Program-made: the position numbers and the translations under genes
The notes under the pieces: model-generated
The model's database searches: none
What the model was told of the DNA's origin: nothing
What the model saw: the letters and a program-made list of their open reading frames with translations, nothing else
Assembly: GCA_028023455.1 (NCBI GenBank)
Contig: JAQFVV010000005.1
Location: 19,096,001-19,160,000 of the forward strand
Reading direction: 5' to 3'
DNA from: Epiperipatus broadwayi
Taxonomy: Eukaryota > Animalia > Onychophora
Length of the DNA: 64,000 bases
Part shown: in pieces, positions 140 to 48,797 of the stretch
How the letters are laid out: every line of letters begins with the position of its first letter
Numbering within the stretch: position 1 is the first letter of the stretch

Positions 140-307
140 CATTTTTATGTGCAGGAGGTGCAGTGATTGCTGACTGGTTCGGAGTCTTAGCAGACTCTGA
201 AACTAGTTCAGCAGTGTGAGAACTCAATGAAGTGCTAGGACCCTGCAGGAAATCACCAAAGGTATCTTCAGAGAAAGGAACTGAGGTAAAACTTTCTGAG
301 ATTGGTT
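140..307 (-). CDS. SYNRG: Synergin-gamma-like exon (EPISESFTSVPFSEDTFGDFLQGP...PPAHKN)
   Basis: 168 bp, phase 1-1; ttactcag| acceptor, G|gtaaca donor; FGDF acidic-phenylalanine motif typical of AP-1 gamma-ear ligands; gene continues beyond the window start. Confidence 0.7.
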
Positions 308-402
308 CTGAGTAATGTATAACATGAATGAAATAAAAAATATATATATTTAGCAACAGAAAACAAATAAGACTTTACGTAAATTAAAAATAAAAGTGAT
401 GC

Positions 403-473
403 ATATTGAAACGAAGATCGGTTCTCCGATCTGTCTGACAGACAGATCGGAGAACCGATCTTCGTTTCAATAT
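403..473. repeat. Perfect 35-bp-arm palindrome with 1-nt spacer and a nested hairpin in each arm
   Basis: 403-437 is the exact reverse complement of 439-473; each arm contains AGATCGG-ttct-CCGATCT or its complement. Confidence 0.95.
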
Positions 474-3400
474 ATATATATTCATGTTTTATATAATAGT
501 AAGCTTTACATCTAAAAATATTTAATAAATATTTAAAATCTGAAATAGCAATTGATTTAGGTGCTTAAATTTTATATTTATAATAACATGTGTGTGTTTA
601 CACGTATATTTAAATATATGAAAAAGAATAAAATGAAAGACAAGAAAGGAATGGATATAAATTGTTTATCATAACTGAACAAGATCATTCGAACAGAGAA
701 AGTAATAAATTAAAAAATCGTAAAAATCTGATATTTGCTGGCCATCAACATACCAATTTTAAAAGTGTTAAAAGAAGATGCAACAAAAGTTTACTTCAAA
801 TAAACAATAAGTTGTATTAAATATGTTTATCAAATGTATAAACTGAATTAAAATTATTCTTAAATATATTTTTCACATTCTGATATTATTTCATTTGTAA
901 GCATAAGAATCAGAGCAGTAAAAGGTCCCCTACTTAATTATAAGTCAAATGAGAACTGTGGATCCCTCCCCCCCCTTTTTTTTTAATAAAAAATTGAAAC
1001 ATATGAACTCACATAAATTTCTGAAGCTTTGAGATGTTCTCAGATAAATTGACACACTTCATTTACTGATATGAATTCTAAGAAGTGACATTGAAAATGA
1101 GATTTTAAATATTTTTTGGGAAATTCAAATTTGACTTGCTATTTAAGATGGTAAAAATATCGAGCTAGTTTACAGCATTATTATAATGTATATTATTCAA
1201 TTGAGATTTTACTAATATTTACTCTGGATAATTCCAATTTTTATTTATTATATATACCTAATAAGTTTTTATAGTATCTATATACAGAAATATTTTCTTG
1301 GTTCATCTATAGTAACTAATAATAATACTGATTTCTGACATTTCAGTTGATTTGTATCTGCAATTGTCTGAGATAAGAAGTGTTATTTTTAAAAAAACAT
1401 GAAACAATTTTTAAAACAAAACTCCTTACATAATCCAGATAAAACTATGATATGAAGTGGAAATGATATGGTATTGTTGAGATTATTCGTTTTTAAATTT
1501 GAATAAAATAATTACATAAAGTCTGTTGTAAATTATGTGAATATTAAAAATCATTTAATAAAAAATGATTTTATTTAATTTGAAGAGTAACTAAAAATAA
1601 AAAAAAATTGTTTTTTCTTTAACCACAATTTTGGTTATTATATTTAACTTGAAATAAAAGTGAGGGGCATACATAAATTAACTAATTGGTGTGAGAAATA
1701 TATAAATTTATTAATTCAAATTGAATTAATTTATTGAAATCATATAATGCTTTTATAATCTTTCATTCACTCACAATTTTGACTGATTTACACTCTTCAT
1801 CAGAACTGCTACTTAATTTGCTTGAACAAAAAAAAAAAAAAAGGAAGCAAACTAAATAATAGCTCTGATAAAAACTGTAGATCAACTAGATATTGTAAAA
1901 AAATTTAAAATTATAAAAGCATTCTATTCAAGTGCATTAAGAATGGATTATACTATATAGAAAAAAAATCATTATATAAATTACAGTTTATGCTAAAATT
2001 GTAATAGCAAACATATAATTTGATATTAACAATTTATAAATAAAACATATACTGAAAATTACAAGATGTGTAATTAATTTTCAATATTAATCATTTCATC
2101 GACTGAACTAGATCTAATAACAGACTAGATTTCTCTTTTAAGATATATGGCATGGAAAATTTAATTTTGTTCCAAATTACCTTTAAAATCTTATATGCAA
2201 GAAAATTATTTTTCATTCAATTTAGAGACTGCAAATATAATTTTGTAATATTAAAAAAAATAAACAAAAATATAAAGCAAGTTTATTTTTAAATTAATAA
2301 TTAAAAATAATATTTAGATTTTTTTTTTTTTGTATGTCCAAATTCAGGGTATTCACAACTTCTTCAGGCATGTATTCTTCCACCAAGTTAATCTTTCAAT
2401 TTCTGAACATTACTTTTAAATGCTAATAAAATTTTTCTTATATATCATTGAATTAACAGCCATGCACACTTTATCAGTGGTAAAATAGCATGCTCAGAAT
2501 TAAAATTTCCAAATTAATTGAATGAGATTATTAAAATGTTCAACCTGCATCTTGGGGGAACATCACATAATCTCCTGAATAATTATTTATATGATTTTTT
2601 AAAGATCAAACTATTTGCAATTTAAATAGACTGATGTAACTGAAACTTCTTACTGATAGCAGAAAAGCAAAAACAGTAACTTGAAAAACAAGGAATTAAA
2701 AAATAGAAATGATATTTTTATAAGTCTATCTTTCAAACACATAACTCTTGTTAAATGATGATGAACAGAGATCAATTATTCCAGCTAAATATTCTCCACC
2801 CCAGTGGAATTTATATATAGCAATAATCATAACGTTATATATGACTTGTTTTTTAATTATTATAAATGTTTTTATATGTGATTTGAATTTCACATATATC
2901 ATCTAACATCAACTATTGACAATTGAAATATTTGTAACAAAAATATACTTTATTATTACATCTTACAGCTTACATTTTTAAATATTAAATAGTACTAAAT
3001 AACACACTAAACATTAGAAAGATAATAAACCTTATTGATTATCTATAAAAGATAAATGATAAAAGAGATATATTATATCTTTTGGAGTCATACTAACGGT
3101 TTATGTATTTAATACAATATTTCTTTGGCATCCTACAAGAAGTATATAAAAGTTTTATATTCATAACAATATGATTCTCCTTTGTATACTCAAAATGATA
3201 TGAACTATGAAATGGGTCCTCACATGTGACAATAAAAAAAAGAATTTCCTCAGAAAAAAATGAAATGAACTGGTATAAATTATTCATCAATAATATAAAA
3301 TACTTTCCATCTTCAATCTTCATAAAATATAACAACTCAATATTTACCATTTGTACTCCTCAACAATAAACTTCCTATTTTCATATGAGTAGAATTATGC

Positions 3401-4199
3401 TCTCTAATATCAGTTAATTTTTTCAAGATCTTGATCTGCTTTTGAAAATCTTGTCACCCATTTGGTTATTTAAACTTCAGTTATCCATACAATTTATTAA
3501 TATTTAATCATATATAGATTTAAGATAACCCAACTGTAGTAACCTTGAAAATGAATATTCTAATCTTTTAATTATATTTTAAGAACTATTAGAGATTGAA
3601 TTTTAAAAACAAATCCCATCTTTGCAACTACTTCTAAACTTAAATAATTTAAATTTTGCATTCACAAAAGTGAAATTAAATAGTTTTGCATTATAAAATG
3701 AAAAGGCAAAACAAAGCTGTTTTGCTATTTTAGTCAGTTTTGAGATCCAAATAAATTTGAGATATTGAAGCTGAATATGCAGATTTGCATATATTGGCTT
3801 CATTTTCAATCAATATTTTAAATAGAACTATCTGTGTGAATGTGTGTACATTAAGTTAAATAAAACATTTAAATGTTTACATAAATTCACATTATTTTAA
3901 GTAATACAAAAATATAAGCAAGAATATAAATAAAATCAGATTTGTTAAAAATATTTTAGTTAAAAACTTTTCTATATTAACATTTAGATATTTTATTCCA
4001 TTCAAACTAAATTAAAAGAATGATAGGAATTCAGTTCGAGTCAGTTTTAATGAAAGGAAGAGAATATTATATTTATTTGCACTCATGGCATTAAAAGCTT
4101 TTAATGTTGTTATCTAGTAGGGTGTATTTAATTCTTTCATTATTATGGTGGGATTAGAAATTAAAATATGTACAAAAATAAGACTATTGAGCTAAAAAT

Positions 4200-4900
4200 A
4201 AATAATAGGTGTCCAGAAGAATAAATTCTTTGGAGGCATAAGGAATTTAATTAGATAAGAGAAATTTGGTTAAATTTGTTGTAGAAAGGTTTCCTTATAT
4301 GGACAAAAAATTTTAAATCAGAGAATTTTCTGGAATCTCTTATTTGGATTTTGGATAAATAACTTGTAAAATAGGTTTTAAAGGTTTTTAAAGTCAATTG
4401 CTGCCAGAAGATCTGTGGGAGGAACCACAGAAATTGTCATACAGATAACTGTCAGCTAGAACAGCAAAACGTCTCCAGTTGGCTGTTCTCCTGAAAGTAG
4501 TCTAAAGGTTACAGCATGAAAGTCATCCATACATCTATTATTAAAAAGCACCTGTCTTATAAAATTTAAAAGCTTGCGGTGCCTCACTGCAATAATATTT
4601 ATCATAGATTCAGGAAAAATAATACTTCAAGAATATTTTTCTTATAGGATTCAATAGTTTTAAAATTATCAAGCTTCATCAATTAATAAAATTATAAATC
4701 AAAAAAATTAAATGCTCTCTCAATGAAGCTCTGTATATGAAAAATAAATTCACCTAAAAAGATCCTGTTAAAAAAAAAAGGAATTCAAGTGAAGCTACAC
4801 CAAGTGTACACCCAATCATAGCAATGTTTCTAGTCTAGATACCATCTGCATACATAAATGATCAATCAGTTTTGAACTATAGCCAAAAACTCTTGCTTTG
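4200..4900 (-). mobile_element. Highly decayed reverse-transcriptase remnant (PLE-like)
   Basis: Minus-strand VLFNNRCMDDF near 4520-4555 resembles RYxDD; the rest is broken by stops. Confidence 0.3.
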
Positions 4901-6541
4901 ATAAAATCACCAATTTAACTTGTTTTCACTTCCATTTTTAATGACTTTGAATGAAATATTTAATAATAATGTATTTTCTTTGAGTAGTTTTACATGGGCA
5001 ATTATTAAATTGACTCATTTACAAGGTTATAATTAGTTAGAAATAAGATTTATCATTCAATTAGTAAAAATGAAAGGACAGATGAGAGAAACCAAAATTT
5101 AATGTTATATTAAACTAATTTAATCTGAAAACAAAAGCTTATATGATAATAATTTAGTCAAAATAAAATTTATAACAATTTCATTAAAATAAATAACTGT
5201 GAATATCTGAATAGGTATGACTTATATAATTTTCATAAATTTACTCTTAGTAACAGTGTAAGGCAAATTTTAGATCAACAATAAAAGAGCAGCTGATTTT
5301 TATTGTCAATGATCACTTGATGGATCAAAACCTGCCAAGATGTTTTATTTCATTTAATTAAATTATTTCTAAATTCTTAGTTATAGTTGATGTAAAGATT
5401 TTTTCATAATACATGATCAGCTCATACCTGTATGATTGCATACCATCATCAATGTCATGTAATGACACTACTTCCATAAGTAGTCATTATATTAAATGTT
5501 TAATTTCCAGGTGAACTCTAATGATATTGGATTTCAATTAATGTTTTCTAATTAGGCTGTCATTATCATTCCTTATTAATAACTGAACTGATGATTATTT
5601 CTTTAAGTATATAGTTATATACCCAATACTACCTTTCTCTCATATGTTTACATAAATATTGGTATACCACATAAATATATTTTATGTTGGAAGTCATAAG
5701 TGATCCTAAGATGTTTTGTTAATTGGTTATTTCTTTTACAGGCTACAGTATAACTGAACCATTTATATTGTTTTATTATTGTATATTTTGAAGTCCCACT
5801 CATTTACTTGATGTATTATATCTTTAAATGTTTGAAGTGATTTATTTTATGAAATGTTTGGATGGTTGTATTTGTTTGTAGATATAGCTGATCTTTATGT
5901 ATGCTTAATCTTAAGTTGGTTATATTTGATAATAAGTATTTTGTTTACAGAAGTATTCCTACATAAAACCACAATATCTAGTGAGATAATTAGAATGCAT
6001 GAGATACTATAAACAACATTCACAGAAACTAGAATTAATGATGGTTTTAACACATCGATTAAGATGAAATGGAGAATAATTCAATTTCAAACACCAAAAT
6101 ACCTTTATTATTAATGATATATTTACATGCCATTTTCAAATCCACAAGTTTCATTACCAACCAAAGGTTAAAGCCATAGATTCAAACTCTGAATGGGCTA
6201 ATATTAATACTGATATTTAGAAAATGATTTTTTATCAAATTCACATAATATTAAAATTGAAAAATTAGTACCACATATTCAATCATGAACTAACCAATAC
6301 TTCACATTTATCCTTAAAAATCTTGTATCAAATTCATGTAATTTACTATTACTGAAGTGATATAGATCATGGAGACAAATTATTACTGTTATCTTGTATT
6401 CGAACCTCAATCAGTTTATTTAATATTTCTTTTTATTTGAGTTTCATGGATATTATGAATCATCTTAATCACATTTGTATATGTAACTGCTTATATAATC
6501 CCATTTATCATAATTTTAATACAAAATTATTTTACCCACTG

Positions 6542-8347
6542 CCATCACCATCATCATCATCAACCATTATCAAATCCACTGCAGGATGAAGGTCTCTGCA
6601 AATTTAATCCATCTTCTCCAATCTTTAGCTTCTCTTCTCCACATCACCCCTGCACATTTTCTTATTTCATCCATCCATCTTACATGTGGTCTCTTTCTGG
6701 GTCTTTTACAATCTCTTGGAATCCAGTTTAAGATTTCAATTGTCCATCTATTATCATCTCTTCTAGCAATATGTCCAGCCCAACTCCACTTCAATCTTTT
6801 AATGTTTTCAATGAGGTCAGTAACACCTGTTTGTTCTCTTACCCATACATTGCGTTTTTGTCCTCTTCTTGTCACTCCCATCATGCATCTCTCCATACTT
6901 CTTTGAGTGGTCTGGAGTCTCTGTATTGCTCTTCTATTAAGTGTCCAAGTCTCAGATCCATAAGTAAGAACTGGTAAAACACATTTGTTAAAAACCTTCC
7001 TTTTCAAACACATAGGCATATTTCCTATTAGTATCAAGTTATTTCTACCAAAAGCACTCCAACCAAGTTTAATTCTATGATTAATTTCATCCATTATGTT
7101 TCCATCTGTATTAATAATCTGACCAAGGTATTCTATAATCAATCTTTATTTTCATATTTTGAGCAAATCGATTTAAACCTTACTTTAGTCTTTTCAACAT
7201 TTACCTTTAGTCCTACTTTCATCTGATAACTCCTGCAACATTTCCTGCAGCTCTGAAGCATTATTTGCAAAAAGAATTATATCATCTGCAAAATCTAAAT
7301 GACTTAAATAATCTCCATTTACTTTCACTCCTTTAATTTCCCATTTTAATCCACAAAATACTTCTTGTAATACTGCTGTAAAACGTTTTGGAGATATGGA
7401 GTCACCTTGTCTTACACCTTTCTCAATGTTGACTTTCCCAGTATCATTACGTAATCTAATGGTTGCTGTTGCATTTTTATAAATATTCTTTAAAATATGA
7501 CAATATCCTGGATCTATACCTTGATGATCCTATGCTTTAATCAAATGCCTTTTCATAATCTACAAATCCAAAATATAATGGCAACTCATATTCATTTGTC
7601 CTTTCTATAACTTCTCTCAATACCTGGATATGATCTACTGTACTAAAGCCACTTTTCAATCCAGCTTGTTCCCTTGGTTGGTGGAAATCCAAAGTTCTTT
7701 GGAGACAAGTTGTAATTATCTTGGTAAAAATTTTGTATAAAACTGATAATAGGCTGATAGGTCTGTAATTTCTAATATCTTCTTTATCACCTTTTTTAAA
7801 TATTAATATTATTACTGCATTCTTCCAATCATCTGGTACATCTTTATCATTTAGACATTTGATATACAACTTTGCTAAAAAAAAATTCTATTTCTTCACC
7901 TGCTTCTTTTAATATATCAATTATAATTCCATCATTACCTGGAGCCTTTCCTTTCTTCATACATTTCATTATATGTTTCACTTCATTTAAAATTCTGGGC
8001 AATTCAGAAGAAGTAATAGAAATAGGAGGTGCTTGTTCTTTATTTCTATATAATTCTCTCTCTTTTTAGTAATAATTACTTTTTTTTTCTTATTGCAGAT
8101 ATAAATTTCCTATCAATACCAAAATGTTTTACTTTCTTGAGACTTTTATTTTCTTCTACAGCTTTCCTTGCTAGTTCACAGTTATACTTTCTTATATCAT
8201 TTTCAACTCTTTTCTGTACCATTTTACAAAATTTGAGATATTCAATCCTTTTTAATGCATCATTTTTGTATATCTTCATATTCATTCTTTTCTTCATAAA
8301 TTCTCTAGTCTCAGTAGAAATTTTATTGGTCAATTGCTGCTTTTTTC
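6542..8347 (-). mobile_element. RTE-clade LINE, 3' part (RT to (GAT)n tail)
   Basis: ORFs 6570-7142, 7537-7869, 8076-8378 with DWKNAVIILIFKKGDK, YRPISLL, CVLPVLTYGSETW; (GAT)n tail near 6542-6560; TSD copy TACCCACTG at 6533-6541. Confidence 0.92.
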
Positions 8348-9556
8348 GGTACTTGTGACGTTTGACCCAGGTGGCCACCAGAGGCGCTGGTCGGGGTCAA
8401 CCACAGAAATACTTAGAGTAGGGGCCCCAAATGCAGCAATGCAAATTCCAGCCGATAGGTGGTGCTGTTCACAATGCGTAAGCACAGGAACATTCCACCA
8501 ACTGGCTGGCGGCAAAGCTGCCCGCTTGGTGGCGCTGGTCGCAATGCATAAGCCCATTTAGCTTACATTGTCTGCAGCACAGGTATCAAGAACCTAGGTG
8601 GCGCTGATTGCCGTAAACACATCTAGCTTATGTGTCATCTGCTAACAGCAACTACCAAGATTCTAGCTCACTACGTGGCGCTTTCTCCACGTTACACACG
8701 GAAAAACTACGCACTGATAGAGTTTATGTACATACTACTTAAAATATGAATGGCGTATAATATACAGGTGTGATTAATTAAGAAGCTACAACTATTTAAA
8801 TATGCTTTCAAACTTCGTAGTGTCACATGCTATTTAAAAGTTTTATAAATGGATGTACTTTTAAATTATTCCTTTTTTAGAAATCGATTTTTTTTTTTTT
8901 AATTATTTACTCTAAAAGTGTAATTTTTACGACAATTGGTTGTTTGTTTTTTTTAAAAAAAAGCTAATTTTTTTCCTTCTTGCAAAACTGTATTATTTTA
9001 AAAGATGATTGTTTGTAAAACTTTTTTTCTTACACTTTCAAACAATATTATCCAATAACTTTTAAAGTAATACAAATTATATTTCGGTTTATACATCTTT
9101 CAATTATTATTTTGCAAACGTGTTATTTTAAAAAGCTGTTACGAGCAGCAAACAATAATTCGAAGATTAAATTACTGGAACTTGTAAAAGTAATGTTAAG
9201 AGCTTAACAATTACTTAATTTGTTTCATAATTACGCTTTTACAAGTTTTGTTAATTTTGGTATAGGATATATCTAAATGAATGTCTAAACATTATGAAAG
9301 AATTTTGAAAAAAGTAAAGGCAATACTTTTTTAGTAGATCTAATTAGAATTTTTGCAATAGGTCACTTTATTTACTTTTATGATAGAACCATCAAAATGA
9401 GAGTCATGTGATGCTGGATGCAGTTGAGAAATGATTAATTACTTGTTCAGTAATTGAAGGTGATTGGTTTATCATGAAATAAGCTAATGAATACATATTT
9501 ATTTTTAATAATGGAAGAAAAAGTTTAATTAAATTTGCATATTAAAGTAAAACAAG

Positions 9557-10508
9557 ATCATCATCATCAACTATTATCAATCTACTGCAGGATGAACATC
9601 TCTCCAAGTTTCTCTACATCATCCCTGCACACTTTCTCATTTCATATATCCATCTAACATGTGGTTTCTTCCTGGGTCTTGTACAATCTCTTGGAATCCA
9701 GTATAAGATTTCAATTGTCCATCTATTATCATCTCTTCTAGCAATATATCCAGCCCAACTCCACTTTAATCTTTTAATTTTTTCAATGAAATCAGTTACA
9801 CCTTATTGTTGTCTTACCAATATATTGCGTTTTCTATCTCTTCTTGTTACTCCCAACATGCATGTCTCCATACTTCTTTGAGTGGTCTGAAGACTGTATT
9901 GCTCTTCTATTAAGTGTCCAAGTATCAGATCCATAAGTAAGAATAGGTAAAACATATTTATTAAAAATGTTCCTTTACAAACACATAGGTATATTTCCTT
10001 TTAGTATCAAGTTATTTCTACCAAAAGCACTCCAACCAAGTTTAATTCGATGATTAATTTCATCCATTATGTTTCCATCTGTATTAATAATATGACTAAG
10101 GCGTTTGTAACTGTTAACTTCTTCTAACGCATCATAAAAAATCTTTATTTTCATATTTTGAGAAAATCCATTAAACATTACTTAGGTCATTTTAACATTT
10201 ATCTTTAGTCCTACTTTCATCTGATAACTACTGCAACATTTCCTGTAGATCTAAAGCATTATTACCAAAAACAACTAAATGACTTAAATAATCATCATTT
10301 ACTTTCACTTCTTTATCTTCCCATTTTAATCCACAAAATACTTCTTGCAGCACTGCTGTAAAAAGTTTTGGAGATATGGAGTCACCCTGTCTTACACTCT
10401 TCTCAATGTTGACTTATCCCAGTATTATTATCTAATTTAATTGTTGCTGTTGCATTTTTATAAATATTCTTTAAAATATGACAATATCTTGGTTCTATAC
10501 CTGAATGA
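9557..10508 (-). mobile_element. RTE 3' fragment inside left foldback arm
   Basis: Similar to 6542-7520, (GAT)n tail; mirrored at 13008-13955. Confidence 0.88.
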
Positions 10509-10880
10509 TATCTCTAGAATTGTCATTATGATGTATTATAGCATTTTTCGGTAGATTTCAACAATTATTAACTTATGGGATTGTGATCAAACAGAAGGCA
10601 AACTTAAAGGAAATAATAAATATACTTGAATTTATTTACTGGTTAGCATCTCTACAGATTTTCTAATATAATGTTTGTGAGTAGTTAGGTGGTTTAATGA
10701 ATCTATAAATGAATTTCTAAATAGACAAATTTTAATATCTATCACCCAACAGAGACTCTTAAATATTTACCAATTTCACAATATCAACTAATAAACTATG
10801 TTTTACTTTGATTAATCATTAAGATTTGATTTAATGCAAGAAATTGTCTACACTCAGGAGGTTACAAATTTATTGCCATC

Positions 10881-11949
10881 CTATTAATTCAAAGGAAACC
10901 CTTTGATTCCTCTTGGAGGCCTTAAAGGAACTGAGCAAGGCTAATTCTTAATGTCCACTCCATACGTTCTTGTCATTACAGTTGTTATTACTATGTGATT
11001 ATTCATATAGTATATAAACATGGATGGGCTGCTCACGAACATGCATGAGCCAGCGTGACGAGGTTATTGGATTTTTACCTCTGAGTTTAAGATCAAGAAA
11101 CACCATGGACTTTCTTATCAGTTGCCTGATAAGGCACAATTAATGCTTGTGTAAATGATAAATATTTTTCAAATATATATATATATACAATTATGACAGA
11201 CAAAAATAAATCATGGCCCTTATTCCCAGGAGACTGTAAAGTCACCAAACCGAGGCAGCAATTGGTGGCCGAAGGCAGAGGGTGCTAAGAATCTCCTGAT
11301 TGTGGACACAGGCTGCCATTTGATGACAACTTTTTTTATTTAGGTACTTATAACTGCAGATCACTTTCAAGTGAAGGAAGATTGCAAGAGTTAGAAGAAG
11401 AACTATCTTATATTAAATGGGACATTATTGGACTTTGTGAAGTTAAAAGAAAAGGTGAAGAAACAATTGTTTTAAAAAGTGAACACGTATTGTACTATAA
11501 AGACACAAATATTGGAAATACAAGTGGAGTATGATTCATTATAAATAAACAGTGGAAGAACAACATTGTGGACATTGATGATGTATCGGATAGAGTGGCA
11601 AGATTAGTTAAATAACTTAATAGCAGATACCAAATGCAGATAATTCAGGTGTATGCCCCAACAAGTTCTCAAAGTGATGAAGTAGTAGAAGATTTTTATA
11701 TGGATGCACAAAAGGCTTTTGATCAGAGTAAACAACATTTTAAAATTGTTATGGGAGATTTTAATGCTAGAATTGGTAAACAAATGAAAGATGAAAGTGC
11801 TGTAGGTAATTTTGGTTATGGTTATAGAAATGAGAGAGGACATAGACTTGTGGAGCTTGCAGGAAAAGGAAAACTTTATATTATGAATTATTATTTTGAA
11901 AAAAATGTTAAACGCAAATGGACATGGAAGCATCCAAATGAAGGTACCA
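10881..11949 (+). mobile_element. RTE 5' fragment (UTR + APE) in left arm and spacer
   Basis: ORF 11634-11978 IIQVYAPTS...VMGDFNARIG; similar to 15440-16555; mirrored in part at 11950-12634. Confidence 0.88.
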
Positions 11950-12634
11950 AATGTTGTTCTTCCACTTTTTATTTATAATGAATCATACTCCACTTGTATT
12001 TCCAATATTTGTGCCTTTATAGTACAGTACATGTTCACTTTTTAAAACAATTGTTTCTTCACCTTTTCTTCTAACTTCACAAAGTCCAATAATGTCCCAT
12101 TTAATATAAGACAGTTTTAGTTCTAACTCTTGCAATCTTCCTTCACTTGAAAGTGATCTGCAGTTATAAGTACCTAAATAAAAAAAGTCGTCATCAAATG
12201 GCAGCCTGTGTCCACAATCAGGGGATTCTTAGCACCCTCTGCCTTCGACCACCAATTGCTGCCTCGGTTTGGTGACTTTACAGTCTCCTGGGAATAAGGG
12301 CCATGATTTATTTTTGTCTGTCATAACTGTATATATATATATTGGAAAAATATTTATCATTTACACAAGCATTCATTCTGCCTTATCAGGCAACTGAGAA
12401 GAAAGTCCATGGTGTTTCTTGATCTTAAACTCAGAGGTAAAAATCCAATAACATCGTCATGCTGGCTAATGCATGTTCGTGAGCAGCCCATCTATGTTTA
12501 TATACTATATGAATAATCACATAGTAATAACAACTGTAATGACAAGAACGTATGGTGTGGACATTAAGAATTAGCCTTGCTCAGTTCCTTTAAGGCCTCC
12601 AAAAGGAATCAAAGGGTTTCCTTTGAATTAATAG
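11950..12634 (-). mobile_element. RTE 5' fragment inside right foldback arm
   Basis: Reverse complement of 10881-11567. Confidence 0.88.
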
Positions 12635-13007
12635 GATGACAATAAATTTGTAACCTCCTGAGTGTAGACAATTTCTTGCATTAAATCAAATCTTAATGAT
12701 TAATCAAAGTAAAAAATAGTTTATTAGTTGATATTGTGAAATTGGTAAATATTTAAGTGTCTCTGTTGGGTGATAGATATTAAAATTTGTCTATTTAGAA
12801 ATTCATTTATAGATTCATTAAACCACCTAACTACTCACAAACATTATATTAGAAAATCTGTAGAGATTCTAACCAGTAAATAAATTCAAGTATATTTATT
12901 ATCTCCTTTAAGTTTGCCTTATGTTTGATCACAATCCCATAAGTTAATAATTGTTGAAATCTACCGAAAAATGCTATAATACATCATAATGACAATTCTA
13001 GAGATAT

Positions 13008-13955
13008 CATTCAGGTATAGAACCAAGATATTGTCATATTTTAAAGAATATTTATAAAAATGCAACAGCAACAATTAGATTAGATAATAATACTGGGAAA
13101 GTCAACATTGAGAAGAGTGTAAGACAGGGTAACTCCATATATCCAAAACTTTTTACAGCAGTGCTGCAAGAAGTATTTTGTGGATTAAAATGGGAAGCTA
13201 AAGGAGTGAAAGTAAATGGTGATTATTTAAGTCATTTAGTTGTTTTTTGTAATAATGCTTTAGATCTACAGGAAATGTTGCAGTAGTTATCAGATGAAAG
13301 TAGGACTAAAGATAAATGTTAAAATGACCTAAGTAATGTTTAATCGATTTTCTCAAAATATGAAAATAAGGATTTTTTATGATGAGTTAGAAGTTAACAG
13401 TTACAAACGCCTTGGTCAGATTATTAATACAGATGGAAGCATAATGGATGAAATTAATCATAGAATTAAACTTGGTGGGAGTGCTTTTGGTAGAAATAAC
13501 TTGCTACTAAAAGGAAATATGCCTATGTGTTTGTAAAGGAAGATTTTTAATAAATATGTTTTACCTGTTCTTACTTATAGATCTGAGACTTGGACACTTA
13601 AAAGAAGAGCAATACAGACTTCAGACCACTCAAAGAAGTATGAAGAGATGCATGTTGGGAGTAACAAGAAGAGATAGAAAACGCAATATATCGGTAAGAG
13701 AACAATAAGGTGTAACTGATTTCATTGAAAAAAATTAAAAGATTAAACTGGAGTTGGGCTGGACATATTTCTAGAAGAGATGATAATAGATGGACAATTG
13801 AAATCTTATACTGGATTCCAAGAGATTGTACAAGACCCAGGAAGAGACCACATGTGAGATGGATATATGAAATAAGAAAGTGTGCAGAGGTGATGTGGAG
13901 AAACTTGGAGAGATGTTCATCCTGCAGTGGATAGATAATAGATGATGATGATGAT
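13008..13955 (+). mobile_element. RTE 3' fragment inside right foldback arm
   Basis: ORFs 13336-13536 and 13725-13934; (GAT)n tail at 13941-13955. Confidence 0.88.
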
Positions 13956-15170
13956 CTTGTTTCACTTTAATATGCAACTTTACTTAAACTTTTTCTACCA
14001 TTATTAAAAATAAATATGTATTCATTAGCTTATCTCATGATAAACCAATCACCTTCAATTACTGAACAAGTAATTAATCATTTCTCAACTGCATCCAGCA
14101 TCACGACTCCCATTTTGATGGTTCTATCATAAAAGTAAATAAAGTGACCTATTGCAAAAATTCTAATTAGATCTACTAAAAAAGTATTGCCTTTACTTTT
14201 TTCAAAATTCTTTCATAATGTTTAGACGTTCATCTAGATATATCCTATACCAAAATTAACAAAACTTGTAAAAGCGTAATTATGAAACAAATTAAGTAAT
14301 TGTTAAGCTCTTAACATTACTTTTACAAGTTCCAGTAATTTAATCTTCGAATTATTGTTTGCTGCTCGTAACAGCTTTTTAAAATAACACGTTTGCAAAA
14401 TAATAATTGAAAGATGTATAAACCGAAATATAATTTGTATTACTTTAAAGGTTATTGGACAATATTGTTTGAAAGTGTAAAAAAAAAAGTTTTACAAACA
14501 ATCATCTTTTAAAATAATACAGTTTTGAAAGAAAGGAAAAAATTAGCTTTTTTTTTTTTAAAAAAAAAAAACAACCGATTGTCGTAAAAATTACACTTTT
14601 AGAGTAAATAATTAAAAAAAAAAAAATCGATTTTTAAAAAGGAATAATTTAAAAATACATCCATTTATAAAACTGTGAAATAGCATGTGACACTACGAAG
14701 TTGAAAGCATATTGAAATAGTTGTAGCTTCTTAATTAATCACACCTGTATATTATACGCCATTCATATTTTAAGTAGTATGTACATAAACTCTATCAGTG
14801 CGTAGTTTTTCCATGTGTAACATGGAGAAACAGTGCCACGTAGTGGGCTAGAATCTTGGTAGTTCCTGTTAGCAGATGACACATAAGCTAGATGTGTTTA
14901 CGGCAATCAGCGCCACCTAGGTTCTTGGTACCTGTGCTGGTAGCAGACGATGTAAGCTAAATGGGCTTATGCATTGCGACCAGCGCCACCAAGCGGGCAG
15001 CTTTGCCGCCAGCCAGCTGGTGGAATGTTCCTGTGCTTACGCATTGTGAACAGCGCCACCTATCGGCTGGAATTTGCATTGCTGCATTTGGGGCCTCTAC
15101 TCTAAGTATTTCTGTGGTTGACCCCGACCAGCGCCTCTGGTGGCCACATGGGTCAAAAGTCACAAGTACC

Positions 15171-16576
15171 TTTTTTTCTACCAGCTATCTTTGTTGCAGT
15201 TTTTAAAAGTGTATCAGTTATTTTCATATTAATTTCATTCAAATCTGAATCATGTTCAAAATCTACTAATACTTGAAACGGATTTGTAAATTCTAATTTA
15301 AATTCATCAGAATGTTTCTGAAGATTAGGAATATCAACTGTAAAAACTGGTTTTCTTAATAATTTTTGTCACTCTAGTTTTGCAGTAACATGTATCTTAC
15401 ATCTTACTAATCGATGATCACTTCCTGTGTTAAATTTATTCAGAACATTACAACTTGAAATATGTATTTTCTGCTAGTCAAAATATAATCCAATTCTGCT
15501 GTACCTTCATTGGGATGCTTCCATGTCCATTTCGTTTTAACATTTTTCTCAAAAAAAGAATTCATAATATAAAGTTTTTCTTTTTCAGCAAACTCCACTA
15601 GTCTATGACCTCTCTCATTTCTATTACCATAACCAAAATTACCTACAGCACTTTCATCTTTCATTTGTTTACCAATTCTAGCATTAAAGTCTCCCATAAC
15701 AATTTTAAAATGTTGTTTACTCTCATCAAAAGCCCTTTGTACATCCATATAAAAATCTTCTACTACTTCATCACCAATGAGCACTTGTTGGGGCATAAAC
15801 CTGAATTATCTGCATTTGGTATCTGCTATTAAGTTGTATAACTAATCTTGCCACTCTGTCTGATACACCATCAATCTCCACAATGTTGTTTTTCCATTTT
15901 TTATTTATAATGAATCCTACTCCACTTGTATTTCCAATATCTGTGCCTTTATAATAGAGTACATGTCCACTTTTTAAATCAATTGTCTTTTCACCTTTTC
16001 TTCTAACTTCACAAAGTCCAATAATGTCCCATTTAATATAAGACAGTTTTTCTTCTAATTCTTGCAATCTTCCTTCACTTGAAAGTGATCTGCAGTTGTA
16101 AGTACCTAAATAAAAAGTCGTCATCAAATGGAAGCCTGGAGCCACAATCAAGCTATTCTTAGCACCCTCCGCCTTCAGCCACCAACCGCTGCCTCGGTTG
16201 GTGACTTTACAGCCTCCTGGGAATAAGGGCCATGATTTATTTTTGTCTGTCATAATTGTATATATCTATTGGGAAAATATCATTTACACAAACATTCATT
16301 CTGCCTTATCAGGCAACTGAGAAGAAAGACCATGGTGTTTCTTGATCTTAAACCCAGAGGTAAAAAGCCAATAAACTCACCACACTGGCTAATGCGTGTT
16401 AGTGAGTAGCCCATCCATGTTCGTATACTATATAAATAATTACATAATAATAACAGCTGCAACGACAAGAACGTATGGAGTGGACATTAGGAATTTGCCC
16501 TGCTCGGTTCCTTTAAGGCCTCCAAGAGGAATCAAAGGGTCTCCTTTCAGTTAATAGCAAACTCCTTTCTGCAGCC
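15171..16576 (-). mobile_element. RTE-clade LINE, 5' part (5'UTR + AP endonuclease) of the same element as 6542-8347
   Basis: ORFs 15771-16253 (LGTYNCRSL, WDIIGLCEVRR) and 15440-15796 (VMGDFNARIG, LDYIL); decayed reading ...KIAGRK|KQQLTNK continues across to 8347; second TSD copy TACCCACTG at 16577-16585; joined length about 3.2 kb. Confidence 0.9.
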
Positions 16577-16795
16577 TACCCACTGTATTAGAATATTAAT
16601 ATGATTTTAAGTAATGCTGTGTCTTTATAATCTTTATATTTTTTTGATTTAGAATCTCTTTTATTCCTGACCTAGAGAGATATAAAAGAAAAATGGGCTG
16701 GTAACACTAAGTGCTGTAGCCAAGTGGAGATATCCAGGGAGTCATGTATAATAATGTTTTATTTTGTACTGTTTATGGTAATATTTATTTCTTTA

Positions 16796-17050
16796 TATGT
16801 TGCACACACATACATACAAAGGTGGATGGACATTCCCTGGTTCTTAAAATTAACTTTACCAGGTTATAAATTTGAACCGTTACAATATATTCTTTCATCT
16901 CTTATATAATCCTCAAATAAAATTATGTTGCACACACATACATACAAGGTGGATGGACATTCCCTGGTTTTTAAAATTAACTTTACCAGGTAATAAATTT
17001 GAACCGTTACAATATATTCTTTCATCTCTTATATAATCCTCAAATAAAAT
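16796..17050. repeat. Tandem duplication, 128-bp unit, two copies
   Basis: 16796-16923 and 16924-17050 differ by about 2 substitutions and 1 indel. Confidence 0.92.
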
Positions 17051-18061
17051 ATTTTTCGAAGTTTTTTTTTAAAGTTATTTCTTCAAACCAATCTTTAGAA
17101 GAAACACATTAGCTTTGTTTATAGGTGGTTTCTCTTAAAAAATAAATAAATAAAATAATATAATTTCTTTGAAGGCTTTCATCATAAAAAAAGTTTTAAA
17201 TAATATAATATGAATAAAAAGATAAATAACAAAAAATCAGCTTTAGGGTAAAGAACTCTCCAACAACCTCTCATAGTGAAATACTGATGAGAAGATTTGC
17301 CAATCACCAGAAAGTGAAGGTTTTAAGTGGATTTTCAATCTTATTTTTAAGCATTAGCTGAATAATATTGGATAATTAGCTGGAATGGTTATGGATCAAT
17401 TACCCAAAAAAAAAAATTGGTAAACCTGCTGTATTCAAGTTCCTCACTTTGGATTAGAACCCAGGTTATAGGCATGACAAGGAGGTGCATTATTGTTGCA
17501 TCACAAGATTCTTCATAATATAGACATGAGTTATGAATAAATATTAGATTCAATTTTCAAAAAAAATCTTAAGAGTTACCACATAGCTCAGTTATTTAAG
17601 GAATTATCTTAAAATAATTCAAATCAGTATGATACAATAAAGATGCAATTTACAAATTAACAATTTTAGGGGAATGGAAGGGGGGAGGGGTAACAAGAAA
17701 TCATAAAGTCTTCCAAATATTTATATTGACTACAGACGCAAGAAATGCAGTCTGCATTAAATGACTTTTCCACTAATATATAAATCTAAACAGACAATCA
17801 ATTATTATCAATTTCAGAAAAGATATTACATTTTCAAGTTTACACAATGTATGCTTAGCTTCAAATAAAGGCAAAAAAAAAAAAATTCTTTTGAAAACTT
17901 TTCCCAGCTTTTAAAAAAGTTACAACAGAAATCCTATTATTACAAATGCTACCACCATCATCAGATGTAACTTTTAGAGCAAAAAACCAACTTTATGCCA
18001 ATTAACATATATATATAAAAGAAACTACGTATATGAGCAAGTTCATATATAACATTCTTAC

Positions 18062-32958: not shown

Positions 32959-35224
32959 TTTTCTGAAGGTTTGTGATAATGATGTTCTAGCTGTATTTTT
33001 ATATTGGAGTATTTCCATCATCTAATATGTGTGTTGAATGTCTTTAGAAAAGTTTAATTTTAGTTAAAAATTGCCTTTAGAAGAAGCAGCAGAATTACGC
33101 TGAAGAATAAAAAGAACACTTGACAAGCAACAAAAATTGCAGTCAAACATATCCTATGGGGAGAGGAAAGCAATTAAATCTCTCAAAGTACATAAATCTA
33201 TAATTATTCTCCCTGCTGACAAAGGCAATGCAACAGTTGTAATGGATACAACTGATTACGACAACAAAATACAAGAACTCCTCACAGCAGGCCAATATAG
33301 AAAAGTGGCAAAAGATCCGATACCAAGTCCGGAAACAAAATTACAAGCATTACTCAGAAAGCATCGCAAGTATTTCACAGATTCAGAAAAGAGTAAAATA
33401 ACATCATATTTCAGCAAAATTCCTCATCTTTATGGTCTACCTAAAATCCATAAGGATCATGTTCCATTAAGACCTATTGTTAGTTCTAGAGATTCACCTT
33501 GCCAAAATTTGGCAAGATTTCTTCTCAAAGTTCTGTCTCCTTTGGCATGCAAGACCCAATCCTTTGTCAGGGATTCTAGACACTTTGTAGAATTAATCAA
33601 GAACATGAACATTGAAAGAACTGACTTACTGGTAAGCTTTGATGTGGAAAGTTTATTCACAAATGTACCATGTGAAGAAGCATTGTCTATTGTAAGGAAA
33701 AGATTAAATGGTGATAATAGTTTACAAACCAGAACAGCTCTTCCTATTGATAGTATAATGGAACTATTAACATTCTGCATAAAAACAACCTACTTTCAAT
33801 ATAATATAGAATTCTTCCAACAAAATCAAGGAATGGCTATGGGCTCACCATTGTCTCCTCTGATTAGAAATATTTACATGGAAGAACTTGAAACCACAGC
33901 CATAAAAACTACTCCATATCCACCTAAAGTTTGGCTTCGCTATGTGGATGATACATTTGTTGTATGGCCACATGGTGAAGCACTGCTACAAACTTTCTGG
34001 AAACACATCAACAACATATCCCCTTCAATTAAATTCACAATAGAATCAGAACAAGAACAAAAATTGGCATTCTTAGATGTTCTTGTGACAAGACTCCCTC
34101 ATGGCAAAATCAAAACTACAGTTTACCGAAAACCTACACATACAGGAAAATACCTAGCCTATACATCCAATTACACCAGAAACACAAAACATGGAGTTAT
34201 ACTATCACTATGGAACAAAGCAAAAGAAGTTTGTTCAGAAACCAACGATTTGGAAAAAGAAAACATCTATATAGAACAAACTCTTATGAAAAATGGTTAT
34301 CCATCAGCTGCTATTAAGAAAATGTTAAATAGACAACAAAAAGAACCATTAAGAGAAAAGACAATTATTGGTACTGTAGTATACCCATACATTCCAAAAA
34401 TAGCAGACAAATTAAGGAAAATCTGCAATCAGTATAACATCAGAACAACTTTCCAGAGCCATACCACACTATGAGGAATTCTAACATCTACAAAGCCTAA
34501 ACTTGAAATGCTGAAAAGAAAAAACTGCATCTATGAAATACCATGTGAATGTGGAAGAACATATATTGGTGAGACCAGTCGTCCCATTGAAAAGTGTCTT
34601 GCAAGAACATAAACTGATGATTAGAAGAGAGAAAACAGATGTGTCTAAGGTAGCAGACCATGTATGTACCAATGAACATACGTTCAATTGGGAAAATACA
34701 AAAATATTGGATAAAGAAGAAAAGGTACAAAGAAGAAAATTTAAAGAAGCTGCTCACATGACAATGGCAAAAAATCCCATAAGCCAACCTAGTGTGACTA
34801 CACATAATGTATGGAAACCACTAATCAACTTTGCTCTGAGGAAAAAGTGGAGAAATCAGGAGGAACCTCATAGATAAGTATATGAAATTACTACATACTG
34901 TTGCCTTTGGCAATTTCAATAATCAAAAATCTAAGGACCCAGGTTCGAATCCCATGCTAGTACTGTCACTGGTCAGGCCAGCAACATCTGAAGAAGAGGG
35001 GAGAAAAATACCTCTCGAAACGTTGCGCATATACTAACCTGTTTACTGTGATATTATTAACATTTATTTGCTGTGATATTACTAACAGTTGGTGCATATA
35101 CTAACCTGTTTGCTGTGATATTACTAACAGTTGAATGCATTTGGAATATTAACTAAAATTAAACTTTTCTAAAGACATTCAACACCATATTAGATGATGG
35201 AAATAGTCCAATATAAAAATACAG
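32959..35224 (+). mobile_element. 5'-truncated Penelope/Poseidon-type PLE with RT, GIY-YIG, hammerhead pseudo-LTR and 5' inverted tail
   Basis: ORF 33137-34474 (LYGLPKIHK, SFDVESLFT, GMAMGSPLSP, RYVDD); CIYEIPCECGRTYIGET near 34525-34575; 16-bp TSD CTAATAATGAATTTGT at 32943-32958 and 35225-35240; 32989-33067 inverted vs 35149-35226. Confidence 0.93.
34981..35030 (+). ncRNA. Minimal type I hammerhead ribozyme motif in PLE pseudo-LTR
   Basis: CTGAAGA 34988-94, A, GAGGGG/CCTCTC stem II, GAAA 35017-20, palindromic ACGT stem III; stem I poorly paired. Confidence 0.65.
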
Positions 35225-37075
35225 CTAATAATGAATTTGTCTTTATTGTCTTGTACATCTCTAGTTTGAACAGTACAATAATGTGGACTGACATTTATTA
35301 ACCATAGTAATGAACTAAGGTCAAAGCAGTCACTATGTAAACAAGTATGAGAATGAAATGATATTTTTATTACGTGACTTTTTAAATCGATTATCGTTGA
35401 TATAACATGCACAACAATGAGCAGTTATGGCAATAAAAAAGGAAATAAACATTTTAATACACTAGGCAACAGAAACTATGCTGGATATAAAAACGAAATT
35501 AATTTTAATTCATCGTCTTTGCAAATTACATACGTGCTACAGAAAGTCAACCTCTTTAACAAAATATTTAGAATGCTATAGAAAATGGATGTGCCATTTC
35601 AGAGAACGGATGTTTTCAAATATATAATTTTAATATAAGACCACAACAAGTCAAAGAAATATTTGAAGTAAAGGAGAATAGAGAATTTCATGTGACTGAA
35701 TAAAATCAGGGAATTGTTTTGAAATGATATTAAACAAAATAATTATAACAATTCTATTTGAACACAAACTGAAAAATAAGAAAGATCACTAGTATTCGAA
35801 GTAGAACTACCAAATAATCTTTTATTGTGTTAAAATCTATAAAATGCAAACTGTAGCTGATTTAAAAACATTATATACAATTAATCACCAAGCAATGTTT
35901 TCTGGCTAAACTGATGATGTCATAAGTGGATCGTTATTTTCCCTGCCATGGAAGGGTAAAAATTTCCTTTATCTACTCTTGAAATGCCAAAAAAACATCT
36001 TTTGTCCAACATGAAGTGCTTATCTATGAATCCGAGGAAAGACTGAGTGAGGGCCAAAGCAGAATTCTTCCAAGTGTACAATGGACAAATGACAATTAAC
36101 GACCTGCACTTTGGTTAAGGAGAACCATTTGTAATGCGTGAACTATACATATATGAAGGACTTTTGCCAGCTCATCAACTTTAATTAAATAGATTTAAAG
36201 GAATTCTGAATTTTTAATTATGTGTTCTAATTTTATGATTACTTTTGTAAATATTTTATTTATTTATTTTTTACATTTCATTTTTTTTATACTTGAAAAT
36301 GTAAAACTTTTGTGATTTAGTTTTTTGGGAGAGTTCATTTTTAAACAGAAGTCGAACGTAGAGGGAGGAATGGTTAATTTTAGTTGAAATTTTTTTTTGT
36401 AAATAAAGTTTAGAATAGCCTTTCTCCACTCATAACGACATGACATTTGATCATTAACCACATGGTACTAAGATAAGATTTTATTATACTACATTGAATA
36501 CACCCACTTTAATAGGACAGAATTTATGTTGCTTGTTACATGCTAATTAACAGTTGTTATATTTGTTCTGTGTGAATGACTAATCTCCTTGGGTGAATGA
36601 TCTTTACTATCACCTTAGGAATTGTACATAGATTTTGGCAGGGCAGGGGTTCCAAGGAAATCAAGCACAGGTCACTGGATTTGGACTATGATGCAAAAGT
36701 AGACATACCAATGGAAAAATTTAACTTAGCTACTTAAATTTGCATTTATGCTAAATCAATCTTATTTTTGTCTTTATTTTTGTTTAAACTTGGTAAATAA
36801 TTGATATAATTAGCATGAATTTCTATCAAGGTGATTATGAGTATGGCAACATAAACTTGTTAAATTACTGATATGATAGAAGTCCATTGTTAACATTCAT
36901 AATTATATATTTTTTTATACATCTGTTAAAACATTTTTGATCTTATTTTGTTTTTGTTCTCTGATAAATGTTAATGAATTTATTAATCTCAATTCAGTCT
37001 CTCTAGTTTATTAAATCAGCCTCAAACATACACACACATCATACTTATATAATAGAATTGATACATCATACTAAT

Positions 37076-39220
37076 TGTAACTTATATAGAGGTGCAGTAG
37101 TTGTCAACTGGCATTAGTGCATAAGAGAGTCAAAAACAAATTTCTCCGAGTCTGAATACTGCAGCATAACTGAAACAGAAAGCGGTAAGAGGTGAATGAA
37201 CCAATCTAAATTGTATCTAAATTCGGTAAATAGGTTTAGAGCTAGTTAATTAAAGGTGGATACAATCATTGGTCATGTACTTCATTGCACCAGCTCCAGC
37301 ATTCTACCTGAAGACCCAAAATCCGACCACAGACAGATGTGACTCCCTCTTTTTTCCCAGACCGTTACATCTGGCATCTAATGTGTTGGGCATGAAGTCA
37401 GATGGTTGTCATATCTTACCTGATAAAATCAATATAATGATCAGTTGCAATTTCAAAACATGTTATTGGGAATCTGATCACATATATAAACAGTACATTC
37501 TATTACATCTGGCGCCCATACTTTAAGTGCACAAAACTAGAAGTTTCAAAGGAGGTCCAGCCATTGGACTGGCGATTAAAAAATAATTTTTTATCAAACT
37601 TCTATAACCTAAAACCTCTGTTATACTTATGCACCTGACGAACAATTAGTACACCCAATTATAAAGAGTGAACATCATGAGTTTAAACTGAGACCAAAGT
37701 TAATAAATGAATAACTAATAAATAAAACTAAAATAGGTGAATTAGGCAAAATAAAATTTAAGCTAAAGAATAGGCATAATAAAAAAAGAGAAAATTAAAT
37801 ATATGCGTAATATGGCTGGGGAAGGTGTGAAATCCATCCATCTAATTGTACCTTTAAAAGAAGGAGTTAACTTTATATTCAACTATTAAAAAAAATTTTT
37901 AATAATAACTAGAAGTGGAAAAAAATTAATTATGGAAGTGAAATGTTCTGAAGAAACATTAAGTACTTACTAGTGATAGTGAAATGAGAGATATTACTGT
38001 TAGTACTGAGGAAGAGTATTTGTAAAGATAATACCTGGGTAATCTGTAGTTGAGATTGGTGACCTACCACAGATACATGTCACTGACCTAGTGACATCTG
38101 AAACCCAAAGACAATCACCCAGAATTGAGGTAGCTCAAATTATTGGAAATCAAATCAAAAAATGAAACAAATACTCCAAGCAATTATGAGTATGTAAACA
38201 AGTTGAAAGCAGACATGAATAGTTTGAAAGCAGGCATAAGCAGTATGAAAACAAAGATGAATTGTAAGATTGGTAGTATGAAGACTACTATGGTAACCAA
38301 GACTGATGTAAAGTATAAGTTCCTTGAGAGATAAAAAAAATGAAAATAGAAATTAAAGATGTTGAAGCTAAATTATCTGAGGTCATGGGACAACTATCCA
38401 TAGTTAAAAAATGTTCAAAAGGATAATGCTGAAGTGAAACAAGCAATGTGGGAAATAAGAACAGAGATGGATAAGAGAGATGTATGATGTCAATTACATT
38501 TCGAAGAGTTTAGTTGCAGTAAGGCCAATCAACTTGACATCAAGTATGAAGAGATGTGCCAAAACCACAGGCCTTTATGAGTGAGATCGATATAACAAAA
38601 ATACCAGGGAAAAGTTCAAGAGGAGCTCCACGAAATTTGCATGAAAGTAGATCTACTTTGACAGAGTACTGACATAGAAATGCGTGAAGAAGATAAGGAA
38701 ACCATGAACCAGATCTAAAGCAGTTGAGAAACAAAGCGGCTTCAAATGAAGCAGAAATCATTGTAACTAAAATGGCTTTAGAAAAGGTCATCAATAGCAC
38801 AAATGGAACACGGGATCAGATTGGTCATTTAGACAAGGCCATCACCTAAAGATTCATATGCATTGAATCTCAACTGTGCCAAAACACATGAGTCATGGAG
38901 ACACAACCAACCAAGATCGGTCAAAGGACCCCAGATGATAAGGGCAGAAGGAATGAGACAGGAAATAGCCTGGAGACTGCTGCTCAGGATCTTGACAGGA
39001 CAACTGACCCCTGTTGGGAATTTACCCTTTCACACCAAACAATGCCTGGAATCTAAAATTATGGAAACAGCCTGGAGACTGCTGCTCAGGATCTTGACAG
39101 GACAACTGACCCCTGTTTGGAATCTACCCTTTCACGCCAAACAATGCTTTTGTGCTTTAAAAAGAGAGTTAATAGATTTTTTGGTTGAAAATTATGACCT
39201 AAATATAAAAGTTAAATAAT
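37076..39220 (+). mobile_element. Decayed LTR retrotransposon 5' part (LTR, PBS, gag-like remnants)
   Basis: TGTAA...TTACA LTR 37076-37507; TGGCGCCCA PBS-like at 37510-37518; broken coiled-coil-like ORFs 38143-38334 and 38863-39219. Confidence 0.55.
38961..39148 (+). repeat. 102-bp-period tandem duplication within LTR-element remnant
   Basis: ggaaa(t/c)agcctggagactgctgctcagg... starts at 38961 and 39063. Confidence 0.9.
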
Positions 39221-40918: not shown

Positions 40919-41317
40919 CAGGAGTCCCCTACCTTTTTGCACTTAAGAGCACATTCTATAATACCGGCCAGGTGGCAGGCACCATTTATTTTTTCCAACC
41001 AGGTGGTGGGCACCATCTATTTTTTCAATGTAAATTTATAGTTGGATATTGTTAATAATACACATAATGTACAAAAAAATATTTATTTCAAAAATAAAAT
41101 TTTAACATATAATGAACGTTTATATTTTTATGCTGTAAAAGTATAGCATGCCCTACAATTTGATTACAATATAATATAATAATTTATAAGAAATTTTAAA
41201 AATTAAATTTATTTGTATCAAATAAATAACTTTTTATCGTGTTCGGATAGCGGCAGGCACAAGTAAAATGGTCTGCGGGCACCATGGTGCCCGCGGGCAT
41301 AGGGTTGGGGACCCGTG
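40919..41317. mobile_element. hAT-type MITE
   Basis: TIRs CAGGAGTCCCCTACC / GGTTGGGGACCCGTG; 8-bp TSD GTGTAACA (40911-18) / GTGTAACG (41318-25). Confidence 0.85.
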
Positions 41318-48693: not shown

Positions 48694-48797
48694 TAAATTA
48701 TTACAAACTTAAAAATATAAACAATAACACTTCTTCCAATGCAATTTACACAACAATGCAATAATTTAATAAGAGTATATTGATGTGATATGATGCA

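Follow-up and report, generated by a model that had tools for sequence, protein, structure and literature searches.

The 64,000-nucleotide window analysed here (the whole stretch of contig JAQFVV010000005.1 of Epiperipatus broadwayi, the source species, from position 19,096,001 to position 19,160,000) contains a palindrome of 6.8 kb, at 8348–15170, which is a foldback-like non-autonomous DNA transposon inserted into a copy of an RTE-type retrotransposon. The reading that we favour, with a probability of roughly 0.6, is that of a cut-and-paste element that acquired its second end when its first end was duplicated by fold-back synthesis. The general architecture of such an element is already known, and the fold junction is well resolved in the present copy. 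Repeat finding in the window returned a colinear chain of inverted segments that spans 8348 to 15170 and comprises the following parts:

8348–11571, plus strand: arm 1, 3,224 bp, with 96.2% identity to arm 2 after reverse complementation
11572–11946: unique centre, 375 bp
11947–15170, minus strand: arm 2, 3,224 bp, inverted copy of arm 1

The two arms (8348–11571 against 15170–11947) form one BLAST alignment of 3,235 columns at 96.2% identity, and their global alignment contains 3,112 matches, 101 substitutions (3.1%) and 11 gap events. Divergence between them is even across all 250-column windows, with transitions about as frequent as transversions. A preliminary description of this DNA, made from the letters alone, had estimated by eye inverted arms of about 3.2 kb with 95–97% identity, and the exact alignment agrees with that estimate. 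The same description had recognised the unique centre and given it a length of 382 bp; the centre is confirmed, and its length is 375 bp by the boundaries used here, the edge of the spacer being ambiguous by a few bases. The termini GGTAC...GTACC, also proposed at that stage, were recovered at both ends: GGTACTTGTGAC is found at 8348 and, reverse-complemented, at 15170. The terminal sequence reads GGTACTTGTGACGTTTGACCC at one end and, on the opposite strand, GGTACTTGTGACTTTTGACCC at the other, and the outer ends of the palindrome are symmetric to the last base. In the 64-kb window, the terminal 32-mer occurs only twice, at the two element ends (expected 0).

The DNA on both sides of the palindrome belongs to a single retrotransposon copy, organised as follows around an 8-bp target-site duplication (TSD):

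6533–6541 and 16577–16585: TSD of the host RTE, TACCCACTG, 9 bp
6543–8347, minus strand: 3′ part of the host RTE with the reverse transcriptase (RT) domain; RVT_1 match at 7537–7869, (ATG)n tail at 6543–6572
8340–8347: left TSD copy of the transposon, CTTTTTTC, 8 bp
15171–15178: right TSD copy of the transposon, TTTTTTTC, 8 bp, followed by TACCAGC
15179–16576, minus strand: 5′ part of the host RTE with the apurinic/apyrimidinic (AP) endonuclease domain; Exo_endo_phos matches at 15440–16253

The two TSD copies of the transposon (CTTTTTTC and TTTTTTTC) match at seven of eight positions. Contigs that match up to 8347 and then run into TACCAGCTATC were found in three sequencing runs: 147 in a run of the source species (X1), 12 in a run of a second species (X13, organism E) and 64 in a run of a third species (X5, organism B). 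Uninterrupted RTE contigs continue past 8347 as TACCAGCTATCTTTGTTGCAG, which is the sequence that follows the right-hand TSD copy of the element. Since these contigs pass 8347 straight into TACCAGC, the empty site is represented by other RTE copies, which confirms a precise insertion with an 8-bp duplication in which one position changed later. When the element and one TSD copy are deleted in silico, the minus-strand frame is open through the site (KIAGRKKQQLTNKIS) without a stop codon, and the longer restored reading across the insertion site is LLKTATKIAGRKKQQLTNKISTETREF. The host is a minus-strand non-long-terminal-repeat element of about 3.2 kb (approximately 6543–16557 minus the insertion); its length, the succession of an AP endonuclease and an RT domain and its short microsatellite 3′ tail are consistent with the traits of RTE elements. 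The 8-bp TSD with one mismatch, the reading restored by removal of the element and the 3.2-kb host RTE with its own 9-bp TSD had all been put forward in the preliminary description, and the three have withstood this analysis.

The RTE family is extremely abundant, by contig depth, in the three species. Besides the interrupted copy, the window harbours another RTE copy at 53237–54072, which is 87–92% identical to the RTE fragments present in the arms described below, and minus-strand open reading frames (ORFs) with RT and endonuclease domains at 49458–51797. Just past the 5′ end of the host RTE, a 127-bp unit is present in two tandem copies (97% identity) at 16796–17050.

From its left terminus to the fold, the transposon is a mosaic of the following segments:

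8348–8700, plus strand: GC-rich end with the GGTAC terminus, 52% GC, mirrored at 14818–15170
8701–9556, plus strand: AT-rich non-coding internal segment, 856 bp, 24% GC, with a copy number that falls inward
9557–10509, minus strand: nested RTE fragment 1, 5′-truncated but retaining an RTE (ATG)n 3′ tail (at 9557), with an inverted counterpart at 13006–13955
10510–10880, plus strand: second non-RTE internal segment, 371 bp, 26% GC, with further occurrences in the genome that share about 91–93% identity
10881–11946, plus strand: nested RTE fragment 2, from the natural RTE 5′ end to RTE position ~1067
11946/11947: fold junction, ...GAAGGTA followed by CCAAATG..., with AATGAAGGTA joined to CCAAATGTTG

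RTE fragment 1 exhibits 86–88% identity to the host RTE (6550–7528) and to the copy at 53237–54072, and RTE fragment 2 exhibits 90% identity to the host RTE (16557–15501), with which it shares the same first 5′ base (CTATTAA...). Because the two pieces end at natural RTE boundaries (a 3′ tail for one, a full-length 5′ end for the other), they correspond to ordinary nested insertions in the progenitor of the element and not to captured cargo. The preliminary description had regarded them as cargo, an interpretation that is contradicted by these natural ends and by a 225-nt contig of organism E, which tracks 10699–10882 with five differences and leaves exactly at the start of fragment 2. The possibility that the RTE pieces were copied from the host RTE at the locus was rejected, their identity to it being 86–90% versus 96% between the arms; the same values sustain the earlier claim of an insertion, as opposed to an inverted duplication that the host RTE underwent locally. 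No ORF longer than 75 aa is present in the non-RTE parts, and the ORFs tested there have no Pfam match. Pfam analysis of the large ORFs and of the ORFs of GC-rich islands in the window detected no transposase and only retroelement RT and endonuclease domains, and no Merlin fragment was found in the window. The earlier view of an element devoid of autonomous coding capacity thus holds for this palindromic, TSD-flanked unit with GG...CC ends.

Palindromes are a known artefact of assemblies and libraries, and reads spanning this one were not seen among the contigs listed. An assembly artefact, or a local inverted duplication formed without transposition, is nevertheless extremely improbable: the 101 substitutions and 11 indels that separate the arms are evenly spread, a single RTE copy is split between the two flanks, complete with TSD and restored frame, and the inner RTE pieces, at 86–90% identity, are not copies of the host RTE. 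It is the arm substitutions, together with flanks that rebuild one RTE copy, that make an artefact implausible.

The turn of the palindrome sits inside RTE fragment 2, whose last 375 bp (11572–11946, RTE positions ~692–1067) form the unique spacer. In the sequence across the fold junction, AATGAAGGTACCAAATGTTG, position ~1067 of the RTE in sense orientation is followed by position ~690 in antisense orientation, and RTE copies present in the reads run on as AGCAGAATTGG past 11947. Microhomology at the fold amounts to about 1 nt; by comparison with the host RTE, at most one C is common to both sides. Such a junction is characteristic of a snap-back template switch or of a microhomology join. A simple hairpin opening at the turn was ruled out, since it would leave no spacer.

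In the favoured scenario, the progenitor would have possessed a left end, AT-rich internal DNA and two nested RTE insertions, and a break or a stalled repair synthesis would have occurred inside the second of these RTEs. The 3′ end would then have snapped back onto its own strand at a point about 375 nt upstream, using about 1 nt of microhomology, and the left half would have served as template for outward synthesis through the terminus, producing a perfectly matched, mirror-image second end. A transposase supplied in trans would have cut the two identical ends and inserted the 6.8-kb unit at a cut staggered by 8 bp in an RTE copy, after which the arms would have diverged by 3.1% substitutions. 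The palindrome likely arrived as one unit.

The order of events could also have been reversed. An ordinary two-ended copy would have inserted first, and the repair of a later break inside it would have copied the left half by fold-back, with annealing in the homologous right terminal inverted repeat (TIR), so that the palindrome never moved as a unit. No feature of the window indicates whether the fold preceded or followed the insertion; moreover, Galileo transposons exhibit TIR-to-TIR transfer of inserted transposable elements (TEs) (PMC4168063), and most animal Pack-TIRs arise via transposition-independent gap filling (PMC8277862). A step in divergence would be expected if the outer part corresponded to the original, independently evolving right TIR. 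No such step is present: the outermost 250 columns match at 239 positions, like the rest of the arms, which counts against growth in situ, and we consider this possibility quite unlikely.

The ends themselves have a distinctive composition. The outer ~350 bp contain 52% GC compared with ~30% for the window, of which they are the most GC-rich 350 bp, and they include five degenerate units of about 70 bp with the core GGTGGCGCTG, at 8380, 8458, 8528, 8597 and ~8672. Allowing up to two mismatches, this 12-mer has 11 matches in the window versus 0.83 expected, 8 of which are located within the two ends. These subterminal repeats are putative transposase-binding sites. A search that allowed up to 7 mismatches in 20 detected no inverted terminus on the inner side by which 8348–8900 would qualify as a complete miniature inverted-repeat transposable element, and a terminal hairpin was dropped as a feature, being no better than in shuffled sequences (z = -0.9). 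The GC-rich end contains two frames of 70 aa, for which the protein collection yielded no homologue, and no relevant match to the terminal 12-mer was found in the literature. The window contains two more GC-rich islands, at 41201–41550 (52%) and 38801–39150 (48%), which are unrelated to the transposon ends and whose ORFs have no Pfam match.

The repeated nature of the ends was apparent from contig depth, a value summed over contigs that is not equal to copy number:

Source species (organism A), X12, a small run from a sample other than that of X1: 761 at 8500–8699; 0.3–2 at 9100–9499; 0.8 at 10500–10699; 166–5,294 over RTE parts
Organism E, X13, a small run: 799 at 8500–8699; 0–0.7 at 9100–9499; 28 at 10500–10699; 445–13,836 over RTE parts
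Organism B, X5: 0 at 8500–8699; 12–17 at 9100–9499; 109 at 10500–10699; 53,000–670,000 over RTE parts

At 8500–8699, the depth is comparable to that of RTE in the source species and in organism E, and it is zero in organism B despite a high RTE depth. The terminal ~500 bp thus look high-copy in the source species and in organism E and are absent from organism B, and the depth in the two former species indicates that the ends belong to a repeated family. A 336-nt contig of organism E matches 8348–8476 and departs exactly at 8348. In run X1, 12–19 distinct contigs with about 91–93% identity cover the inner non-RTE segments (sites 10739 and 12776), and at five positions (8804, 8816, 8817, 8822 and 10739) both arms carry a common letter unlike the read majority. 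Such private letters, common to both arms, indicate that the arms descend from one progenitor copy, from which the other family members are about 8% distant. BLAST and nhmmer recovered no other copies of 8348–8900, 8900–9556 or 10510–10880 in the masked window, and the terminal motifs had 0 matches in the metagenome and viral collections scanned.

Although the GC-rich end family is missing from organism B, a contig of this species shows about 90% identity over 9204–9339. The inner AT-rich DNA is therefore probably a different, older repeat or host sequence.

Two small RNA-type runs (X14 and X15) contain 11–16% of the sampled words from the terminal 1.2 kb (8348–9556), so that the end family may be transcribed.

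The family has GG...CC termini, GC-rich ends with the GGTGGCGCTG array and an 8-bp TSD, and Merlin is the most plausible candidate superfamily for it. The hallmarks of Merlin elements are 5′-GG termini, TSDs of 8–9 bp, TIRs of 24–462 bp and a transposase with a DDE_Tnp_IS1595 domain (PMC8101967). The present element has the 5′-GG terminus (GGTACTTGTGAC) and, at the one insertion examined, a TSD of 8 bp. Its 3,224-bp arms exceed about 7-fold the Merlin TIR range, which is descriptive, and the GC-rich, motif-bearing end of ~350 bp would by itself fit into this range. It also has the organisation typical of FB and Galileo, consisting almost wholly of two long non-coding inverted arms flanked by a TSD.

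Assignment of the element to another superfamily of DNA transposons (a Mutator-like element (MULE) with an 8-bp TSD, hAT, P, Zisupton or Novosib) appears to us somewhat unlikely. No transposase was seen, 8-bp TSDs are common to several superfamilies, and long TIRs with arrays of binding motifs, together with the acquisition of sequences, are typical of MULEs. Galileo has a TSD of 7 bp (8 bp for P itself) and termini beginning with CA, features that do not correspond to the 8-bp TSD and GGTAC termini observed here. The TSD length fits that of hAT elements (8 bp), but the GGTAC termini do not fit their YARNG termini, nor do they match the CANRG termini of P. MULEs usually have TSDs of 9–11 bp, long TIRs with binding-site arrays and a MURA-type transposase; with respect to them, the motif array is present and the 8-bp TSD is atypical. 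Finally, the termini begin with GG, as in all described Merlins (PMC8101967).

Several observations weigh against the interpretation of the palindrome as a mobilised, Merlin-like cut-and-paste element. One of the eight TSD positions is mismatched, and the combination of GG termini with an 8-bp TSD is also compatible with an unusual MULE or with another superfamily. Neither a second full copy nor a distinct right end, a transposase or an autonomous partner was seen, and the evidence for a family consists of contig depth and one contig boundary. Among the contigs listed, which are short and mostly RTE copies, none spans both arms or a copy-specific junction. Moreover, TSD-flanked inverted arms are also produced by head-to-head insertions of the retro type, of which the window provides an example at 47926–48706.

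Applied to the palindrome, such a process would mean that reverse transcription of a long chimeric RNA started from its 3′ end at both nicks of a single target and that the two resulting cDNAs were joined head-to-head. The unequal inner ends, the microhomology junction and the inward-falling copy number would also fit 5′ truncation. The outer ends of the palindrome are, however, symmetric to the last base and carry no tail, and its TSD is 8 bp, whereas the insertion at 47926–48706 has non-matching outer ends and a 13-bp TSD. The GG...CC ends with their subterminal motif array are typical of transposase-binding ends, and the process would require an RNA of more than 3.6 kb containing the RTE 5′ part in antisense. 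A retro-type origin therefore seems to us decidedly unlikely. The Penelope-like and retrozyme head-to-head insertions of this genome resemble the palindrome by their TSD-flanked inverted arms and asymmetric inner junction; they differ from it by a TSD of 10–15 bp, unequal outer tails and a hammerhead, compared with an 8-bp TSD and symmetric GG...CC ends. None of these Penelope-like or retrozyme traits was found in the element: searches for hammerheads and structured RNAs gave no Rfam match with E ≤ 1 in 6000–17500, no match anywhere in the window reached the gathering score, and the hammerhead core CUGANGA is absent from the non-RTE parts.

The 47926–48706 insertion is itself retrozyme-like: the two copies of its 13-bp TSD (TAAATTATTACAA) match perfectly, its direct repeat unit measures 463 nt, and its inverted arm of 135 nt shows 99% identity; its outer ends are not symmetric.

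The preliminary description knew of no published element of the kind that it proposed, a statement that, as far as architecture is concerned, does not stand in view of Galileo, a transposing element for which TIRs of 4.2–4.7 kb with nested TEs have been reported (PMC4168063). Copies with long TIRs of this member of the P superfamily are present in Drosophila willistoni and D. mojavensis (PMC4168063). In the D. willistoni copy 112, which is 9,021 bp long, the TIRs measure 4,246 and 4,680 bp and both contain fragments of other TEs, the TSDs are identical and there is no transposase, and another TIR pair (1,575 and 1,608 bp) shares 97.5% identity; the growth of Galileo TIRs has been attributed to the recruitment of internal and inserted sequence (PMC4168063). 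With its two kilobase-long TIRs, the TE fragments in both, its TSDs and its non-autonomous nature, Galileo is the closest described architecture. It differs in that its longest TIRs carry tandem repeats of ~140 bp, whereas the present element has no long tandem arrays, and has an 8-bp TSD, GG ends and a fold point resolved to the base inside an RTE.

Other foldback elements are the Drosophila FB elements, whose arms are made of expanding tandem subrepeats and whose TSD is 9 bp, and the plant elements FARE and SoFT. Like these, the palindrome is composed almost wholly of long inverted arms, has motifs repeated near its ends and is flanked by a TSD. The FB arms differ from those described here, which are made of unique mosaic DNA with nested retrotransposons.

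A related mechanism, FoSTeST, has been proposed for animal Pack-TIRs, in which a template switch with 1–2 nt of microhomology is followed by transposition (PMC8277862). In both situations, a microhomology-guided switch would occur inside a TIR element and the chimera would then transpose; in the present one, the switch would return to the element's own strand, duplicating its end, with no sequence captured from a foreign locus. If the proposed history is correct, this copy would represent a clean case, resolved to the base, of a transposon that regained two working ends from one via a fold-back template switch.

Merlin elements share with the palindrome the 5′-GG termini and the 8–9-bp TSD, and non-autonomous derivatives of them are known (Feschotte, 2004; PMC8101967). 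They differ from it by described TIRs of 24–462 bp versus arms of 3,224 bp, and the window contains no DDE_Tnp_IS1595 coding sequence. Should the ends prove to be those of a Merlin, the TIR range of this superfamily (24–462 bp) would increase about 7-fold, and the foldback architecture known from FB and Galileo would have arisen in a third superfamily.

Long mobile palindromes are also potential fragile sites, substrates for inversions and possible sources of hairpin RNA. Mu killer of maize is an inverted duplication of a partial MuDR element; by analogy, the long inverted transposon duplication described here could yield a hairpin RNA. A broader scenario can be imagined, in which the Merlins of this genome are a lineage that repeatedly evolves kilobase-long foldback arms while remaining mobile, thereby converging on the architecture of FB and Galileo, and in which the palindrome, with RTE and transposon sequence in both sense and antisense orientation, could be a Mu killer-like source of hairpin RNA silencing both RTE and the transposon. 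We regard this scenario as unlikely.

Elsewhere in the window, an 80-nt inverted repeat (32988–33067 and 35149–35227, 97.5% identity) flanks a plus-strand ORF of 445 aa with an RVT_1 domain (33137–34474), so that 32988–35227 constitutes a reverse-transcriptase element with inverted ends.

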